From sequence record MZ443771.1: DNA of 64,000 nucleotides; one strand, written 5' to 3'. The notes beneath the pieces were generated by a model. The model was not told where the DNA came from. It was given only the letters and a program-made list of their open reading frames with translations, and did no database searches. The position numbers and the translations under genes are program-made. Shown piece after piece: positions 4,684 through 27,783 of this stretch. How positions within the stretch are numbered: position 1 is the first letter of the stretch; each line of letters starts with the position of its first letter.

Positions 4684-5709
4684 TCATTCCTCCAATACTC
4701 CGCTAATCTCCGAGAACATATTTTTGTACACTAAGGAACCATCTAGCTTGTCCAGTCTATCAACGAGAACATACAGTCTGGGTGACGTGCGGATATTAGC
4801 CCACGTCTTCTCATTACGGTCAAGTCCACCAAGCATCGGGACAATGACTATGCTGAGATTTTTGTTTGCCCTGACAAAGCCTACGTCAATGTGCTTCCTG
4901 TTTATACTTCTGAACAGCCTGTTGATTGCGTCCAAACCCACAGGCCGATTAAATTCCGTATCACTGACTGTATTGACTAAGCTGATGAGTATCCCTTTGT
5001 CCTTACCCTCGATCTCAAACAACGCAGCTTTCAGGTCAGCAACCGTCGAAGCGGAGAAGTATGAAACATCGTGGTTATAGTCCTTGAGACAACTGCCAAG
5101 CGCACGGGCAGATTCGATATGCGCAGCATTGTCATCTCTAAGGATATACACAGGAGCGTCTGCTTGGTAAGTCCGAGCAGTCATGAGATTGATAAGATCA
5201 CAAGAGGGCTTGCCTACTGTGGCTAAGCCCTTATTTGCAATGAAAAACTTATCTTTATACACATCGTAAATGTTTGGTGGCATGTACTTCATGTAATCAT
5301 CGTCCAGACTAAGAATCATTCGAGGCTTAGTTAACTGGACGACGAGTTGCATACTACGAAGCGATGCCCTATATTCCGTATCAGACAGAACTCGACTAAT
5401 CGGAAGGTATTGTACGACAACGAATCGGTCATCAATCGAATCGACAACCGAACGTATGAGCGTACTGCCTAGCGAGGGACCGGCAGAGAATTGGGTAACG
5501 AGCATCAAGCTATCTTCAACTAAGCCTTTAGACTCTGACAGCGTGATACCGTTACCCGTTTGCTTTACCGAACGCTCCCACGTTATTGTGGGGTCGTCTC
5601 GCTGATCGGCATGTACATCAATTGCGCTACACCAGAGACAGGCTCCAAGAATGTAAGCAGCAATACGTTGTCTGGATCTGCTTCTGCCGGGTTGACGGTT
5701 TCCGGCCAT
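4684..5709 (-). CDS. Exported protein resembling periplasmic binding-protein-like sensor domains
   Basis: GGAG SD and a signal peptide (RSRSRQR-IAAYILGACLWCSAI-DVHA). Alternating beta/alpha pattern with a P-x-x-I-L-S-L-D-D motif. Confidence 0.6.
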   Translation of the reverse strand: MAGNRQPGRSRSRQRIAAYILGACLWCSAIDVHADQRDDPTITWERSVKQTGNGITLSESKGLVEDSLMLVTQFSAGPSLGSTLIRSVVDSIDDRFVVVQYLPISRVLSDTEYRASLRSMQLVVQLTKPRMILSLDDDYMKYMPPNIYDVYKDKFFIANKGLATVGKPSCDLINLMTARTYQADAPVYILRDDNAAHIESARALGSCLKDYNHDVSYFSASTVADLKAALFEIEGKDKGILISLVNTVSDTEFNRPVGLDAINRLFRSINRKHIDVGFVRANKNLSIVIVPMLGGLDRNEKTWANIRTSPRLYVLVDRLDKLDGSLVYKNMFSEISGVLEE

Positions 5710-23861: not shown

Positions 23862-24283
23862 TACTGTGACCTCATAGCAAACGTAATTGATTGTTTGTCT
23901 TCGAGCTTAGGACAACGCCATGTGACAACACACACGTAAGTCTGCTCGTATTGATCGCTCATGGTACAGGCTGTCTGCACGTTCGTCACGTCTTGCGTCA
24001 GACCGTTGTATGGGTCTTCGAGTGCGAGGCGCATGTACGTTGCAATCCAGTCTGCTGTAGTCTGGTCGAATGGGTCAAACAGGTATTGATATACGTCTGC
24101 ACCAAAGTTCTCTCGCCACTTGCGGGAACGCTTTCTCGTACCGATTACCATGAGAATCTTCTGGACAATACTGTCCATGTTCTGCACGTTATCACGCGGT
24201 TCAAGTTGAATCCACGCATTGATATCACAATAGATGCGCTCGCTTAGTGGCACGTCTATCAGTCGAATCCCGATTCCTGCCAT
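23861..24283 (-). CDS. Baseplate wedge protein (gp25-like)
   Basis: I...I..I.T..R.R..R..FG..(V)...LFDP.D motif, next to the PAAR gene. Confidence 0.8.
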   Translation of the reverse strand: MAGIGIRLIDVPLSERIYCDINAWIQLEPRDNVQNMDSIVQKILMVIGTRKRSRKWRENFGADVYQYLFDPFDQTTADWIATYMRLALEDPYNGLTQDVTNVQTACTMSDQYEQTYVCVVTWRCPKLEDKQSITFAMRSQ

Positions 24284-24573
24284 TAGCCAAATCTCACGTT
24301 AGAACTACCATTTGATGCCGTGTCGCCGCAACTGTTAGGGTCACCTGCACGTTGAGCAGGCTTGCCATTGACACGTACACTTGAGCTTGAAGTAGCACTA
24401 CCTGTATGTGGTGGTTTCTTCGGTTTCCAGTGCGGTCGATACTTGTCGCCTTGACGAACACTCCCTTTTCCATTAACAAGCACATTAGAAGATGCTTGCG
24501 CAGGAACGACAGGGAAATAGCCGCTATGTCCAGTAGACAAATCTGTGCCTAAACGAATAGCTTTCTGACCCAT
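24283..24573 (-). CDS. PAAR-domain spike tip protein (gp5.4-like)
   Basis: AIRLGTDLSTGH...SSNVLVNG...R.GD...H...SSSVRVNGKPAQRAGD..CG motifs. Confidence 0.9.
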   Translation of the reverse strand: MGQKAIRLGTDLSTGHSGYFPVVPAQASSNVLVNGKGSVRQGDKYRPHWKPKKPPHTGSATSSSSVRVNGKPAQRAGDPNSCGDTASNGSSNVRFG

Positions 24574-24574
24574 A

Positions 24575-24697
24575 TCAATTCCCTCTTTTCATTGCTGGAA
24601 TCTTAGGAGCTTTGGGCAGTTTGAATGGCGCTGGGCTTAACTTGCGCTTGCCTTTAAGCACGTCTAAGTACAAATTCCAATCAGTAGATCTGCACAT
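24575..24697 (-). CDS. Small basic 40-aa protein, not in the ORF track (MCRSTDWNLYLDVLKGKRKLSPAPFKLPKAPKIPAMKRGN)
   Basis: AGGAG SD, GCTAATTT motif 25 nt upstream, and a stop abutting the PAAR start. Confidence 0.6.
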   Translation of the reverse strand: MCRSTDWNLYLDVLKGKRKLSPAPFKLPKAPKIPAMKRGN

Positions 24698-24721
24698 CGC
24701 TTAATCTCCTCTGTTAGACAC

Positions 24722-24729
24722 AAATTAGC
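24722..24729 (-). promoter_or_regulatory. GCTAATTT putative late promoter
   Basis: Just after a terminator, 25 nt upstream of ATG 24697. Confidence 0.6.
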
Positions 24730-24742
24730 TTGATACGCCCCA

Positions 24743-24773
24743 GAAACAAAAACGGGCGACCCGAAGGCCACCC
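24743..24773 (-). terminator. Rho-independent terminator with UUCG loop closing the gene-free interval
   Basis: GGGTGGCC-TTCG-GGTCGCCC followed by GTTTTTGTTT. Confidence 0.85.
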
Positions 24774-25980
24774 AGTTCTTGTGCTTGGAATTTTGTCGCT
24801 TATCCCCTTACGCCCGATGCAAGTGCCACACGTCATTAGACGCGGAGCCGGGATGAATGACCGAGAGTAGTGGCGCACGCCACGCCTGTAAGTGACTCTC
24901 GGGACATGATAGCAAGCGACCAAGCATCGCAATTGCTATCAGCGACAACATGAGCAATATCATTATTGTCGTACTCTCTTTAAACGAACTGGGTACATCA
25001 TGGTTTTGATCAGACTACTCCGCTGCCCTTTGCCCAACATCACTAGGGTTTCAGTTTCTTCATCTCTTTACCGCCTACGTTGCGGCGAACCGCGCACAAG
25101 AGCAACACATCAAGAGCACACGGCGGAAAATGGGAAAAGTTCCGTATGCGCTAACAGCATCACTCAAGCGAAGGAGGTGGACGTATCGGTGATCTGCGGG
25201 AGTTGATACACGTTTTAACAATCGCTATCTTTTGTGCATTAAATCGAAACAGGAACGCGATTGCCCGCTAACATTTCCTGATCGATATTTCACACCCGAG
25301 TAAGCGGGTTTTCAGCTATGGCAGTACGTCAGCAGATGGCGGCAGACACACTCCATTGAACACTGTTAAGGGCAGTGCCCAACAGGCTGTGAACAGCTTT
25401 GACCAAACGTAGAGTCGCTCGTCGCCCAACATCACTTGAGTATCTCGTCTACATTCTTTTACTCCCTAACGCCGGTACAAGGAAGTCCGACGCCATGAGG
25501 GTCTGCGGATGTTTATCACTCTAAGACTCTTCCAACTTATCCCCATACGCAGTGAATCGAGTCGTCCGCTGGATAACTCACTGCGTACCCGTCAATGCGT
25601 CGTGCGACATTGAGGAATAGTCGGTGGAAACTTTTATCATGGAGAGTAGATATCTCCCCAATGCACACTGTTATTGCCAGCCAATGTGCATCAGGCAGCG
25701 TAACTGCAAACTGCTATCCCTATAAGAGAGGCCACAACGCTGGTGGTACGTTCCGCCTGTCTACGCACCTAGAGGCAAATTGCCGTGCCATGTCTGTGCA
25801 AGAATACCAGCTGGGCCTTGTAAGCGTCAGCAGCAGAGCAATAGTCTATCGCGTGGGTGCCGGGGTTATCCTCACGATTACAGAGCGCGAACTCAAACCG
25901 GCTGGAGGCTCGTCACTGATAAACGGCAGCGACAAGTTTAATACCAGACAGCACCCGCTAAGTATACTGTCTGGCTGAGA
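24745..25980 (-). ncRNA. Candidate large structured non-coding RNA (~1.2 kb); class unknown, ends approximate
   Basis: No credible CDS. At least seven stems, several with G-U pairs that form only on the minus strand, and a 3' terminator. Confidence 0.55.
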
Positions 25981-26019
25981 CATATTGATATTACTATCTG
26001 CAATTTTTATTTACAGATT

Positions 26020-27783
26020 TTAGAACGCCTTACGCTCAACATTTGAATAAAGTGTATCGTAAGGTTCAGAGTACAGTTCAGGTCCGCGTTGTGCGCGAAT
26101 CGTCACGTAACCTGTATGACGGTTAAACGCTGTGATTTCGACTGTAGGCTGTTTAGGCTTGATGGTCGCATAAATCGGAGCATTCAGTGTAGGCTCGTCT
26201 GTCTGAATCTTATTTACAGATTGCAGAGCAGCACCAGAAACAGTCGGCAAGTTGAAACGCAGTTCAGCACGTTTCTGACCGAACGCAGCGCGAATCATAC
26301 CACGCTCCATCTCTACGCCATTCTGTTTGAGGTATGCAGCAATGCGACGAGCAATACCGGTCAACTGGTCACGAGTACGAGGGTCGAATGTACCTTCGAA
26401 ACTGATTGCTTCCGGCGGCTGACGCACGGACAGATGCAGACCAGTGTTGAAGTAACCCTCAGTCAGAAGACGCAGCACTTCTTTTACGACTTCTTGCGTG
26501 TTTGGTTTGATTGCAGCGATGCGCAGCTCAGGCACATCTACTTTGACCGGGTCGCGCAGCTCAGTTTGGTTATCCATGTAACCGAGAGACACATGCTTTG
26601 CGTTTGCATACGTGTGCTGCAATACGCCAGTAGCACGAATCAGAACAGAGCCGCCTTTAGCAATGTCGTAGAGTTCGTCGCTGGTGGTTGTGCTGAACAG
26701 GTAGTAGTCTGTAGGCACTGCCATGCGATTAACCGCTTCGACTGCTTTGGTCTGTACTTCTTTTACAGTTTTACCGAAGACTATACGACTACGGTTAGGC
26801 TGAGAAGCAGACACAGGGAAGAATGCGCCGTAAACAACTTCGACGTTCTTCTTGATAGGACGCTCAGATGGAACCTTAGTGCCGCCAGACAGAGGTGGCA
26901 GCTTCACGCCCACCAGCTTGCCTTTGACGATAGCTTTGTTTTCTTTGACAGGCTTGAGGCCGTCAATCACTTTCGCCAGATCAGCACCGCTAAGAATCTT
27001 CTCCAGCGGAACAGCGAGGTTCTGCGGCAAATAGTGTTTCTTGCGATACGAGTAGATTACGGTGTCTTTCTTGATCTGAATAGGCGTTGCCATATTGCGA
27101 CCAATAACACCGACCGGCTGGAACGTGTTTGCTTTGTCGTCAGCGATTGTGCCATAAGCCTTCGTGAACTCAGTCTGGCCGATGATGTTCGCAGCACGTA
27201 AGTGACCACGAATGATAAACACAATCTTCGGTTCGTCTTTCAGGCGCAGCTCGTAGCGGTCACGGTTCAGGTAAACCATGCTGTACTTGTCGCCTTTCTC
27301 CAGTTCGAGATCGTACTCGTCGTTAGCGTCATCGACAACGACTTTCTTACCCTGATACGTAGAGTAGGTGCGAGCGCCCGCAGACTCAGAAGCAATCTCC
27401 AGTGCCTTGCCTGTATTAGACAGCGCAACTGCGAAGTCCATAACGGCGGGCATCAGGTCGAACGAAGATGCTACTGCATACGGTTTGCGTTTCGGACCGA
27501 GCTGAACGTGTACGGCACTGCTGCTGGACATGAACACGGTATTGCCTGTGTCTTCATGAGTACCAGCGAAGTGCATACCACTAATGCGCTCGATGATGTT
27601 CGCGTTGAGTGAAGGGAATGCAATATCGCTACCGGCAGTGAAGTCATAAATTTCACCGTTGCGCCATGCGTATGCGACATTGTTCGAACTAAGACCTACA
27701 AACGCATCACCCAGCTGGCGAATCGTCAGCGGCATAATGCTTAGGTCACGAATGACTCTGTGTTGCTTTTGAATGAGGTTCAT
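26020..27783 (-). CDS. Hypothetical protein (587 aa) containing one copy of the shared SH3-like paralogue domain
   Basis: TYSTYQGK...LEKGDKYS...RYELRLKDEPKIVF resembles segments of three other proteins in this window. Confidence 0.75.
   Translation of the reverse strand: MNLIQKQHRVIRDLSIMPLTIRQLGDAFVGLSSNNVAYAWRNGEIYDFTAGSDIAFPSLNANIIERISGMHFAGTHEDTGNTVFMSSSSAVHVQLGPKRKPYAVASSFDLMPAVMDFAVALSNTGKALEIASESAGARTYSTYQGKKVVVDDANDEYDLELEKGDKYSMVYLNRDRYELRLKDEPKIVFIIRGHLRAANIIGQTEFTKAYGTIADDKANTFQPVGVIGRNMATPIQIKKDTVIYSYRKKHYLPQNLAVPLEKILSGADLAKVIDGLKPVKENKAIVKGKLVGVKLPPLSGGTKVPSERPIKKNVEVVYGAFFPVSASQPNRSRIVFGKTVKEVQTKAVEAVNRMAVPTDYYLFSTTTSDELYDIAKGGSVLIRATGVLQHTYANAKHVSLGYMDNQTELRDPVKVDVPELRIAAIKPNTQEVVKEVLRLLTEGYFNTGLHLSVRQPPEAISFEGTFDPRTRDQLTGIARRIAAYLKQNGVEMERGMIRAAFGQKRAELRFNLPTVSGAALQSVNKIQTDEPTLNAPIYATIKPKQPTVEITAFNRHTGYVTIRAQRGPELYSEPYDTLYSNVERKAF

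Follow-up and report, generated by a model that had tools for sequence, protein, structure and literature searches.

What occupies the only long interval without annotated genes in 64 kb of a jumbo phage genome? The window, by which we mean the whole stretch of 64,000 nucleotides taken from record MZ443771.1, belongs to Erwinia phage pEa_SNUABM_20 (Alexandravirus; a jumbo phage), and its minus strand carries every long ORF. Positions 24698-26019 are the sole long stretch without an annotated or long ORF. A first-pass annotation of the sequence had described this interval as the one long gene-free gap, and no other such gap was found in the window, but the interval is not free of short ORFs: a 51-codon ORF on the minus strand (24808-24963) is open in all relatives. 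The same annotation had placed the interval inside the baseplate cluster. It lies instead at the edge of that cluster, with a nucleotide-metabolism module on one side and PAAR, the first baseplate gene, on the other. The flanking genes are both complete. The neighbouring 587-aa protein has a KMPT-N domain only, and we found for it neither a solved relative nor a tie to RNA.

The interval had been proposed to encode a large non-coding RNA, with conservation in relatives as one check. Forty-six phage records match it, and in 34 the match (71-100% identity) spans the full length; in none of the 46 is a long ORF annotated there. The interval length is preserved (1.27-1.36 kb, at 57-93% identity) in Alexandravirus, Sasquatchvirus, the SNUABM_34 group and one metagenomic phage, and all domains of the RNA keep their order and length in every full-length relative. 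Identity to relatives is 60-78% for the RNA, which exceeds the 47-79% (mostly 55-67%) at third codon positions in the genes on either side. A divergent metagenomic copy is spread over two contigs with half on each, which we treated as separate pieces without joining them. A specific motif scan of viral and metagenome contigs returned the known clade only. A second, looser motif pattern gave chance matches, with nothing credible left after filtering with the model and nhmmer.

We then compared the sequences for compensatory changes. The minus-strand consensus predicted by RNAalifold has 298 pairs, and changes on both sides are found in 111 of them, against 13-31 compensated pairs with shifted partners. 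Twenty-two helices contain at least two compensated pairs each. The consensus fold energy is -278.5 kcal/mol for the sense strand versus -168.1 kcal/mol for the antisense strand. In a few stems, imperfect positions had been noticed to be G-U pairs on the minus strand and A-C mismatches on the plus strand; this asymmetry extends over the whole structure, where G-U cells on the minus strand number 606 and A-C cells 41. In the sequence Y3, which was left out of the prediction, 80.6% of the pairs are kept versus 38-45% in shifted controls, and the corresponding values for Y3 together with the metagenomic pieces are 67-81% versus 37-49%. Of the 18 pairs in the R1 alignment, 12 are changed on both sides by a formal count, and the observed values were reached in none of 500 shuffles. 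The evidence for structure is comparative; taken by itself, the folding energy of the single sequence does not stand out (z = -1.8). By the general test for a structured non-coding RNA, compensation here exceeds that in controls, is strand-specific and holds in unused sequences. We regard the structured minus-strand RNA as almost certainly real. The proposal of a large minus-strand RNA running in the direction of the virion genes is supported in the sequence comparisons: about 1.25 kb covaries strongly and in a strand-specific way, a promoter-like box is conserved, a terminator is present and no Rfam family matches.

The predicted features are listed here from 5' to 3' along the minus strand.

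24743-26003, minus strand: predicted large structured transcript of about 1.25 kb, with an approximate start and an end at the U-tract of the terminator.
25987-26020, minus strand: promoter-like box, 34 nt, invariant, directly 3' of the stop codon of the 587-aa gene; contains TGTAAATA and an 8-bp inverted repeat.
25944-25974, minus strand: first hairpin, with a conserved loop and a variable stem (per-sequence folds).
25909-25936, minus strand: second hairpin, 10 pairs, 9 of them with a compensatory change.
25718-25907, minus strand: 5' conserved domain, with an interrupted 20-bp long helix and a 12-bp hairpin.
25393-25717, minus strand: central multi-helix domain, holding the hairpins 25658-25694, 25546-25587 and 25407-25454.
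25291-25391, minus strand: two-hairpin domain (25357-25381, 4 compensated pairs; 25318-25356, 2 compensated pairs), with 98-99% canonical cells.
25243-25286, minus strand: hairpin, 10 pairs, 7 of them compensated.
25070-25190, minus strand: domain with an 8-bp closing helix and a 22-bp long hairpin; its helices have 2, 7 and 6 compensated pairs.
25022-25057, minus strand: hairpin with repeat copy 2, 12 pairs, 8 of them compensated.
24808-24963, minus strand: putative small ORF of 51 codons, hydrophobic in its N-terminal half, inside a covarying RNA domain.
24783-24925, minus strand: 3' junction domain of about 145 nt overlapping the small ORF, with a 6-bp closing helix (24925-24920 / 24788-24783).
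24743-24779, minus strand: intrinsic terminator, a G+C-rich stem capped by a UUCG loop, with a U-tract (terminator scan).
24706-24731, minus strand: element of 26 nt, invariant, which separates the terminator from the PAAR operon and includes a GAGGAG ribosome-binding site.

The untranslated part of about 1.06 kb is predicted from the alignment to have at least six domains and about 45 helices. The first hairpin is misaligned by MAFFT and becomes visible in per-sequence folds, which contain a hairpin of 9-13 bp with different stem letters at this place in every Alexandravirus lineage. The 5' conserved domain has many invariant unpaired bases, CCUCC among them, and compensated pairs are found in its helices 25854-25833/25788-25763 (nine) and 25762-25749/25739-25725 (four). 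In the central domain, hairpin 25658-25694 (model R1) has four compensated pairs, hairpin 25546-25587 has ten with a nearly invariant loop region (25559-25573), and hairpin 25407-25454, which carries repeat copy 1, has seven. The 13-nt direct repeat that had been read at 25032 and 25424 is real and in fact longer, comprising 28 nt at 79% identity (25025-25052 and 25417-25444); the inner 15 nt of both copies are conserved and the flanking stem covaries. In the domain 25070-25190, the closing helix 25190-25182 / 25079-25070 covaries, and an unpaired CCUCCUU (25171-25177) is invariant in Alexandravirus-type sequences and lies inside a stretch that is deleted in Y3. The inner hairpins of the 3' junction domain have five, three, two, four and three compensated pairs.

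Most of the stems picked out by eye in the first-pass annotation are recovered in the consensus. For those at 25661-25691, 25546-25587 and 24861-24902, 89-98% of cells keep the pairing and each stem has 5-10 compensated pairs, and those at 25243-25286 and 24907-24941 are kept with seven and three compensated pairs, respectively. On the other hand, the stem at 24943-24971 is paired in 56% of cells with no compensation and is unconserved, and the inverted repeat suggested to close the whole domain (25928-25935 with 24793-24800) is paired in 35% of cells, with its competitor at 45%. We found no support for an end-to-end closing helix or pseudoknot: when we scanned for additional long-range helices or pseudoknots that covary, the candidates had only 4-6 bp and did not rise above noise. 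The pairs of the long-range closing helices are mostly invariant, so these helices carry little covariation evidence.

The interval of 1.3 kb contains one terminator and one conserved upstream box. The box is identical in 14 of 14 Alexandravirus-type sequences and 97% identical in Y3, and it occurs in one copy in the window and about once per genome. A role as a general phage promoter was rejected on this copy number, and TRTAAATA is unenriched. A simple scan found no sigma-70 promoter on the minus strand. From its conservation and position, we infer that the box is a putative promoter for a phage-directed (late-type) RNA polymerase holoenzyme. If the box is a promoter, it follows that the RNA would be made as its own transcript ending at the terminator, and we consider it likely that the RNA is an independent transcription unit. 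The terminator, including the UUCG loop that had been noticed by eye, was recovered by a terminator scan at 24774-24743. Its 13 pairs are canonical in 100% of cells, two of them are compensated, and the loop differs between lineages.

Does this RNA belong to a known family? Rfam 15 gave no match at the gathering threshold for the window and 11 related loci, in agreement with the earlier failure to place the sequence among ROOL, GOLLD, tmRNA, RNase P RNA or introns. A search of positions 24500-26200 at E values up to 10 returned only noise far below the cut-offs (snoRNA, miRNA, fstAT), and even at this level there was no Rfam match to group I or group II introns, RNase P RNA, tmRNA, 6S RNA, OLE or HEARO. 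The covariance models of ROOL (RF03087) and GOLLD (RF01998) did not match the window or the 11 related loci, and ARAGORN found no tRNA or tmRNA in the 64 kb. No description of this RNA was found in a full-text literature search. Because no Rfam 15 family matches, we assign the RNA to a new family of large structured phage RNA. It is apparently an undescribed large structured phage RNA and a strong candidate for a new class.

Parts of the locus extend to other genera. With the model R2, the 3' junction domain is detected ahead of PAAR in SNUABM_5 (E 1.6e-6), in Yoloswag (5.6e-5) and in Yersinia phage fHe-Yen9-02 (1.6e-3). Other sequence takes the place of most of the 5' kilobase in Yoloswagvirus, Rivsvirus and Salmondvirus, where one hairpin of it is detected weakly and alone (E 3e-4 to 8e-3). 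In Yoloswag, the box core is found twice: the first copy lies behind the terminator of the upstream gene and precedes an ORF-poor 0.65 kb, and the second lies directly upstream of the small-ORF homolog and precedes the small-ORF module. The 3' module would be an older, separable unit, as its Yoloswag copy has its own box.

We favour, with fair confidence, a minus-strand unit consisting of the box, the structured RNA, a 3' domain with the small ORF and the terminator, in which a late, putatively trans-acting RNA is combined with an older 3' module. A phage-directed late-type holoenzyme would start at the box, and the RNA would be made as its own transcript that stops at the terminator. The 5' kilobase would be trans-acting, whether as a scaffold, a ribonucleoprotein or, like ROOL and GOLLD, an assembly of RNA only, and the twice-repeated conserved hairpin module may be a contact or binding site. 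The 3' module would either make a small membrane peptide under tight control of RNA structure or gate read-through into the PAAR/baseplate operon. Whether the 5' kilobase acts in trans is, in our judgement, a nearly balanced question that leans slightly to the negative.

Phages and prophages also encode GOLLD, an ornate RNA of more than 800 nt. Like GOLLD, the present RNA has a 3' module found in more genera than its 5' kilobase. GOLLD, however, usually adjoins tRNA genes, and here none is nearby and neither sequence nor structure matches; the present RNA is longer (about 1.25 kb), includes a conserved small ORF and belongs to Enterobacterales jumbo phages. ROOL is likewise a large, highly structured phage or prophage RNA recognised by covariation, and to our knowledge it has no known protein partner or function. 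In contrast to the present RNA, which has no supported pseudoknot and no tRNA nearby, ROOL is about 0.6 kb in length, has several pseudoknots and is often near tRNA islands. OLE (RF01071) is another large ornate RNA, and it acts as a ribonucleoprotein at the membrane, to which the small membrane peptide nearby is a loose parallel. OLE is chromosomal, occurs in extremophilic Firmicutes and has the partner genes oapA-C, whereas none of these is present here and the model does not match.

We know of very few bacterial or phage non-coding RNAs longer than 600 nt. Ribosomal RNA, RNase P, group II introns, OLE, ROOL and GOLLD are catalysts, ribonucleoproteins or self-assembling cages. An RNA of about 1.25 kb with 22 covariation-supported helices would add a class to this short list. 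Direct measurement of expression, partners and three-dimensional structure is rarely possible for classes whose members come mostly from metagenomes; here it would be possible, the source being cultured, sequenced phages of tractable hosts (Erwinia and Dickeya). A bolder idea, which we put forward tentatively and consider somewhat doubtful, is that this RNA would found a new class of giant ornate RNAs in phages, larger than GOLLD and ROOL and the first in Enterobacterales jumbo phages, in which a late RNA machine or RNA-only assembly would be physically joined to a small membrane peptide gene. The syntenic ORF-poor stretches in Yoloswagvirus, Rivsvirus, Salmondvirus and the Yersinia phage would then be fast-evolving relatives in a superfamily.

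The small ORF raises the possibility of a messenger. Three-base periodicity of variable sites is absent in the interval, and neither the periodicity test nor the ORF conservation map gave a coding signal in the first ~1.06 kb of the RNA; in that map, the small ORF is the only ORF conserved across relatives. By these comparisons, base pairing of the minus-strand transcript, not codons, is under selection. The transcript may nonetheless be dual-function or partly a leader, because its 3' 150 nt also carry the conserved small ORF. In a messenger RNA, the kilobase would form an unusually long, structured leader, with translation of a small hydrophobic peptide controlled by the 3' domain. The gene would then be dual-function, or a membrane-peptide gene under tight gating, following the logic of type I toxins or RNAIII. 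The ORF is open in 17 of 17 sequences, extending 47-53 codons from a conserved start with length differences in multiples of three. AGGAG is found 5-7 nt upstream in most lineages (the window's own site is weak), and five other genera or lineages have homologous small ORFs with a hydrophobic N-terminus in the corresponding position. A long-range helix closes the domain around the ORF and could hide or expose it. The many-hairpin RNA with a short peptide ORF on the same transcript resembles RNAIII of Staphylococcus, SgrS/SgrT and SR1. These dual-function RNAs are 0.2-0.5 kb in length, chromosomal and act via defined seed loops, and they have no homology to the present RNA. The hok/sok type I messengers are similar in having a hydrophobic ORF of about 50 codons inside a folded messenger with long-range pairing around the coding region, and here the 51-codon ORF, with its hydrophobic N-terminal half, is part of a domain that a long-range helix closes. 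However, no antisense RNA is evident and neither a promoter nor a terminator is found on the plus strand at the ORF, and Pfam, NCBIfam and PHROG gave no match to Hok/Gef, Fst or another toxin family. The Rfam match to the Fst antitoxin (fstAT) was rejected as noise, with 18 bits versus a cut-off of 72 and on the plus strand.

The changes in the ORF speak against a messenger. Its pN/pS of 0.62-1.24 gives no sign that the peptide is under purifying selection, and the three codon positions vary about equally, the mean numbers of distinct bases being 2.09, 1.89 and 2.16. In the shared hairpins, third positions are conserved across genera, and the changes found there are compensatory in the RNA and radical in the peptide. 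The peptide has no match in Pfam, PHROG or NCBIfam, and the window and Yoloswag peptides are not significantly similar although the RNA module is shared. As the Yoloswag ORF has a box directly upstream, the kilobase is not needed as a leader of the ORF. Pairing of CCUCCUU with the ribosome-binding site of the small ORF was rejected because the motif and the site do not co-occur across lineages: Y3 has the site without the motif, and the window has the motif with a weak site. We regard a messenger as an unlikely account of the whole RNA. The embedded small ORF is a test case for overlapping constraints of RNA structure and coding.

Less probable again is a cis-acting attenuator, in which the 3' part or the whole RNA would be a sensor that decides, with the strong terminator, on read-through into the PAAR/gp25/wedge baseplate operon, the small ORF being a leader peptide. 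The structured domain, the terminator, 26 nt with a ribosome-binding site and PAAR follow one another in the same order in all genera examined, and no clear promoter is found between the terminator and PAAR. The 26-nt element is invariant in all relatives including the metagenomic phage, and unique in the window. Attenuator and riboswitch leaders also consist of a structured RNA followed by an intrinsic terminator directly 5' of an operon. Here, no known aptamer matched and no conserved antiterminator was found, as the scan for further covarying helices gave candidates at noise level only. Furthermore, no Rfam riboswitch or leader family matches, and the RNA of 1.25 kb, about ten times longer than such leaders, far exceeds known attenuators. 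Three lineages have an additional 125 nt, including a 40-codon ORF, inserted between the terminator and PAAR. The conserved small ORF with its usual ribosome-binding site, and a place directly upstream of an operon behind a strong terminator, agree with cis roles (messenger leader or attenuator) as well as with a trans role.

Several separate small RNAs in place of one large RNA are slightly more improbable still. Such an arrangement would agree with the mostly local nature of the supported helices, with the mostly invariant long-range closing helices, which contribute little covariation evidence, and with the single modules that are kept alone in other genera. Against it, there is only a single terminator and a single conserved box in the 1.3 kb, domain order and length are fixed in every full-length relative, and some domain-closing helices covary (for example, 25190-25182 / 25079-25070). 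A DNA-level element such as an origin of replication or a site for packaging, a protein gene in decay, or protein genes missed in annotation would suit a locus at a gene-module boundary with short CDSs annotated in some relatives, but these are very improbable in view of the strand-specific pairing (G-U 606 versus A-C 41), a G+C content that is the same as in the flanks with a skew that shows no turn, the lack of iterons in the interval beyond one two-copy repeat, the absent codon periodicity, and the ORF pieces, which match no family when searched singly against Pfam and PHROGs. The short CDSs annotated in relatives differ between records and are unconserved, and the "hypothetical protein" calls at this gap in several GenBank records are probably spurious.

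The interval belongs to Erwinia phage pEa_SNUABM_20 (MZ443771.1, genus Alexandravirus, 265.9 kb), whose record is identical to the window across it. The minus strand holds every long ORF of the 64 kb, in tight packing, and no annotated gene lies in 24698-26019. The first-pass annotation had put this interval inside the baseplate cluster. By the flanking gene annotation it lies instead where a nucleotide-metabolism module meets the baseplate module, because the 587-aa gene and nucleotide genes lie on one side (dTMP kinase, MmcB-like nuclease and NUDIX hydrolase are annotated upstream of the 587-aa gene in relatives) and baseplate genes on the other.

Features of the interval and its flanks
26020-27783: hypothetical protein of 587 aa flanking the interval, with a Pfam KMPT-N domain only
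25987-26020: box, a 34-nt promoter-like element directly after the stop of the 587-aa gene
24808-24963, minus strand: small ORF of 51 codons, N-terminal half hydrophobic
24779-24743, minus strand: terminator
Other flank: first baseplate genes, namely a 40-codon ORF, the PAAR spike tip (24283-24573), a gp25-like protein and a wedge protein

Every genus examined has the 587-aa gene in synteny with the RNA locus (43-100% identity). Its KMPT-N domain covers residues 140-201, and neither a solved relative nor an NCBIfam name was found for the protein. The 40-codon ORF (24575-24697), annotated as a baseplate wedge subunit in AD1, is located on an insert of ~125 nt between the terminator and the PAAR gene that occurs only in the window's clade, AD1 and pEa_SNUABM_33. 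In the other relatives, an invariant 26-nt element is followed directly by the PAAR start. Located between the terminator and the PAAR operon, this element (24706-24731) does not vary in any relative, the most distant included. Such conservation exceeds the requirements of a ribosome-binding site and may reflect a promoter or a regulatory hairpin (5 bp, 24724-24710).

When the interval was compared by BLASTn, as the first-pass annotation had suggested, 46 phage records matched. Full-length matches, at 71-100% identity, numbered 34, and a long ORF is absent there from all 46. The non-redundant set comprised 14 copies of 1311-1361 nt (pairwise identity 57-93%), to which we added Sasquatchvirus Y3, pEp_SNUABM_52 (58% identical to the window) and a divergent phage from a metagenome, with its copy divided between two contigs and treated as two separate pieces. 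These IMG/VR contigs, the end of L028 and the start of L030, come from the same metagenome (3300013825) and overlap by ~105 nt; the assembly is broken inside the structured part of the RNA. The full RNA is present in Alexandravirus, Sasquatchvirus, the unclassified SNUABM_34 group and one metagenomic relative. In the RNA region, relatives share 60-78% identity with the window, compared with 47-79% (mostly 55-67%) at third codon positions of the flanking genes, which are less conserved, and with first and second codon positions, which are more conserved. Its conservation is a mosaic of invariant blocks and variable, indel-rich stretches. Scanning genomes and viral contigs with a loose pattern yielded chance matches only.

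The RNAalifold consensus for the minus strand has 298 pairs, 111 of which are still paired in at least one sequence with both sides changed. With the 3' partners shifted by 1-3 columns as a control, 13-31 pairs qualify and paired cells fall from 96.8% to 35-45%. The plus strand folds into 217 pairs at -168.1 kcal/mol, against -278.5 kcal/mol for the minus strand. The strand asymmetry of G-U pairs over A-C mismatches, which the first-pass annotation had seen in a few stems, extends to the whole minus-strand structure (606 G-U and 41 A-C cells). Since the prediction is itself partly selected for covariation, the structure was tested on sequences that had not been used in it. Y3 keeps 80.6% of the pairs (38-45% when shifted), and 35 of its 56 pairs changed on both sides still pair; the two metagenomic pieces keep 67% and 81%. 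In a covariance-model alignment of the domain at 25636-25717, which includes two antisense rows and hence slight noise, 12 of 18 pairs are changed on both sides, and none of 500 shuffles reaches any of five measures. At least two compensated pairs are found in 22 of ~45 helices; the single-sequence folding energy is unremarkable (z = -1.8). As judged by these comparisons, the predicted minus-strand RNA structure is under selection.

Among the stems of the first-pass annotation, those at 25661-25691, 25546-25587, 24861-24902, 25243-25286 and 24907-24941 are supported by the relatives, and the one at 25944-25974 occurs in every Alexandravirus lineage with a conserved loop and quite different stem letters. 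The stem at 24943-24971 is not conserved among relatives. The inverted repeat thought to close the whole domain is paired in 35% of cells and its competitor in 45%, and neither is supported. The direct repeat proved real and longer (28 nt, 79%): each copy forms the conserved inner part of a hairpin with a covarying outer stem, and Y3 has lost one copy and retains a degenerate other. Two invariant CCUCC motifs (25171-25177 and 25904-25908) are similar to the anti-Shine-Dalgarno core of 16S rRNA, and at the former the identity with the 16S 3' tail extends to ten bases. This number of occurrences is not above that expected by chance, and the motif at 25171-25177 falls in a stretch deleted in Y3.

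The UUCG terminator reported at the end of the interval, a G+C-rich hairpin with a U-tract, is present in every relative; G-C pairs are exchanged for G-U in places and the loop varies. At the other end, the box is the same in every Alexandravirus-type sequence and 97% identical in Y3, exceeding everything around it in conservation. It occurs once in the window and about once per genome. It includes TGTAAATA, which is one base off the T4-type late promoter element; this octamer is not enriched in the window. In Yoloswag, the box core occurs twice, just after the terminator closing the upstream gene and directly upstream of the small-ORF homolog. This phage clade carries its own sigma factors (PMC7412058). 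We infer that the box may be a dedicated promoter.

The three phases have nearly equal shares of variable sites (0.64, 0.63 and 0.65), and the only uneven 150-nt test window, starting at 24847 (p = 0.013), overlaps the small ORF. This is also the only conserved ORF among those of at least 20 codons on both strands of all sequences, and the longest ORF pieces, searched singly, matched no Pfam or PHROG family. The short CDSs annotated in the gap of some relatives vary between genomes; the differing ones in SNUABM_17, _32, _35 and _2 are probably spurious unless they match the small ORF in position. Antisense to the RNA (25595-25978, plus strand) runs a 127-codon ORF, and its counterpart is an annotated CDS in pEa_SNUABM_22. 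It is probably a spurious gene call, because the frame is not conserved in other relatives.

The small ORF is open in 17 of 17 sequences (47-53 codons from a conserved start), with all length changes in frame and AGGAG upstream in most lineages. Overlapping it, 145 nt form an RNA junction domain closed by a 6-bp helix (24925-24920 with 24788-24783), whose inner hairpins have 2-5 compensated pairs each. The pN/pS of the ORF is 0.6-1.2, with equal variation at the three codon positions; the last hairpin has changed in ways that compensate in the RNA and are radical in the peptide, which has no family match in Pfam, PHROG or NCBIfam. Similar ORFs immediately precede the PAAR gene in Yoloswag, pEa_SNUABM_5, JA13, JA29 and Yersinia phage fHe-Yen9-02. 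The covariance model of the junction domain matches SNUABM_5 (36.8 bits, E 1.6e-6), Yoloswag (29.6 bits, E 5.6e-5) and fHe-Yen9-02 (22.8 bits, E 1.6e-3), each time on the sense strand and in the syntenic place. By eye, both sides of the Yoloswag closing helix differ and pairing is kept; the SNUABM_34-group peptide is significantly similar to that of Yoloswag, whereas the window's is not. The 3' module is accordingly an RNA domain first of all, in which an ORF that may be translated stays open. A perfect 14-nt palindrome ~45 nt upstream of the small ORF (columns about 1153-1166 of the alignment of RNA copies) occurs in most Alexandravirus relatives and the metagenomic phage; the window's clade has another sequence there.

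Yoloswagvirus, Rivsvirus, Salmondvirus and the Yersinia phage have different ORF-poor stretches, 0.6-1.0 kb long, between their 587-aa and PAAR genes.

ORF-poor stretches in the comparison loci
L047 (Yoloswag): 4774-5484
L048: 4777-5400
L049: 4777-5512
L050: 4777-5779
L053: 1-663

They have in common a motif of ~30 nt, with two copies in Yoloswag (about 5101-5130 and 5363-5390). The covariance model of the 25636-25717 domain finds its hairpin weakly in these gaps (E 3e-4, 2e-3 and 8e-3), on the sense strand of the syntenic gap every time. This suggests, without establishing it, that the RNA and these stretches form a fast-evolving superfamily. The stretches may be an analogous or very diverged large RNA.

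What the comparisons show is selection on a predicted RNA structure of the minus strand, together with a terminator, a conserved box upstream of it and an open frame embedded in it. Our best guess is that the RNA would be an independent late transcript, with its 5' kilobase folded and acting in trans as a scaffold, in a ribonucleoprotein or by self-assembly, and that the hairpin module present in two copies would provide a contact site. The 3' module, presumably the older part, might express a membrane peptide under structural control, or gate read-through into the baseplate operon. Alternatively, the RNA might be the long leader of a peptide messenger or an attenuator, or the interval might hold several small RNAs. 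The strand-specific G-U pattern and the lack of a coding signal effectively rule out both a DNA element and a decayed gene.

The first-pass annotation could not match the interval to ROOL, GOLLD, tmRNA, RNase P RNA or an intron, and an Rfam 15 search of the window and related loci was empty. Searches of full-text literature, the supplement to a 2023 catalogue of candidate viral structured RNAs aside, turned up no description of the RNA. Its nearest counterparts are ROOL (about 0.66 kb) and GOLLD (over 0.8 kb), large ornate RNAs of phages and prophages whose functions are unknown and which form RNA-only cages. The present RNA differs from both in sequence, fold, host range and size, has no tRNA neighbours and contains an embedded ORF. 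GOLLD shares with it a 3' part that is widely conserved and a 5' part that varies.
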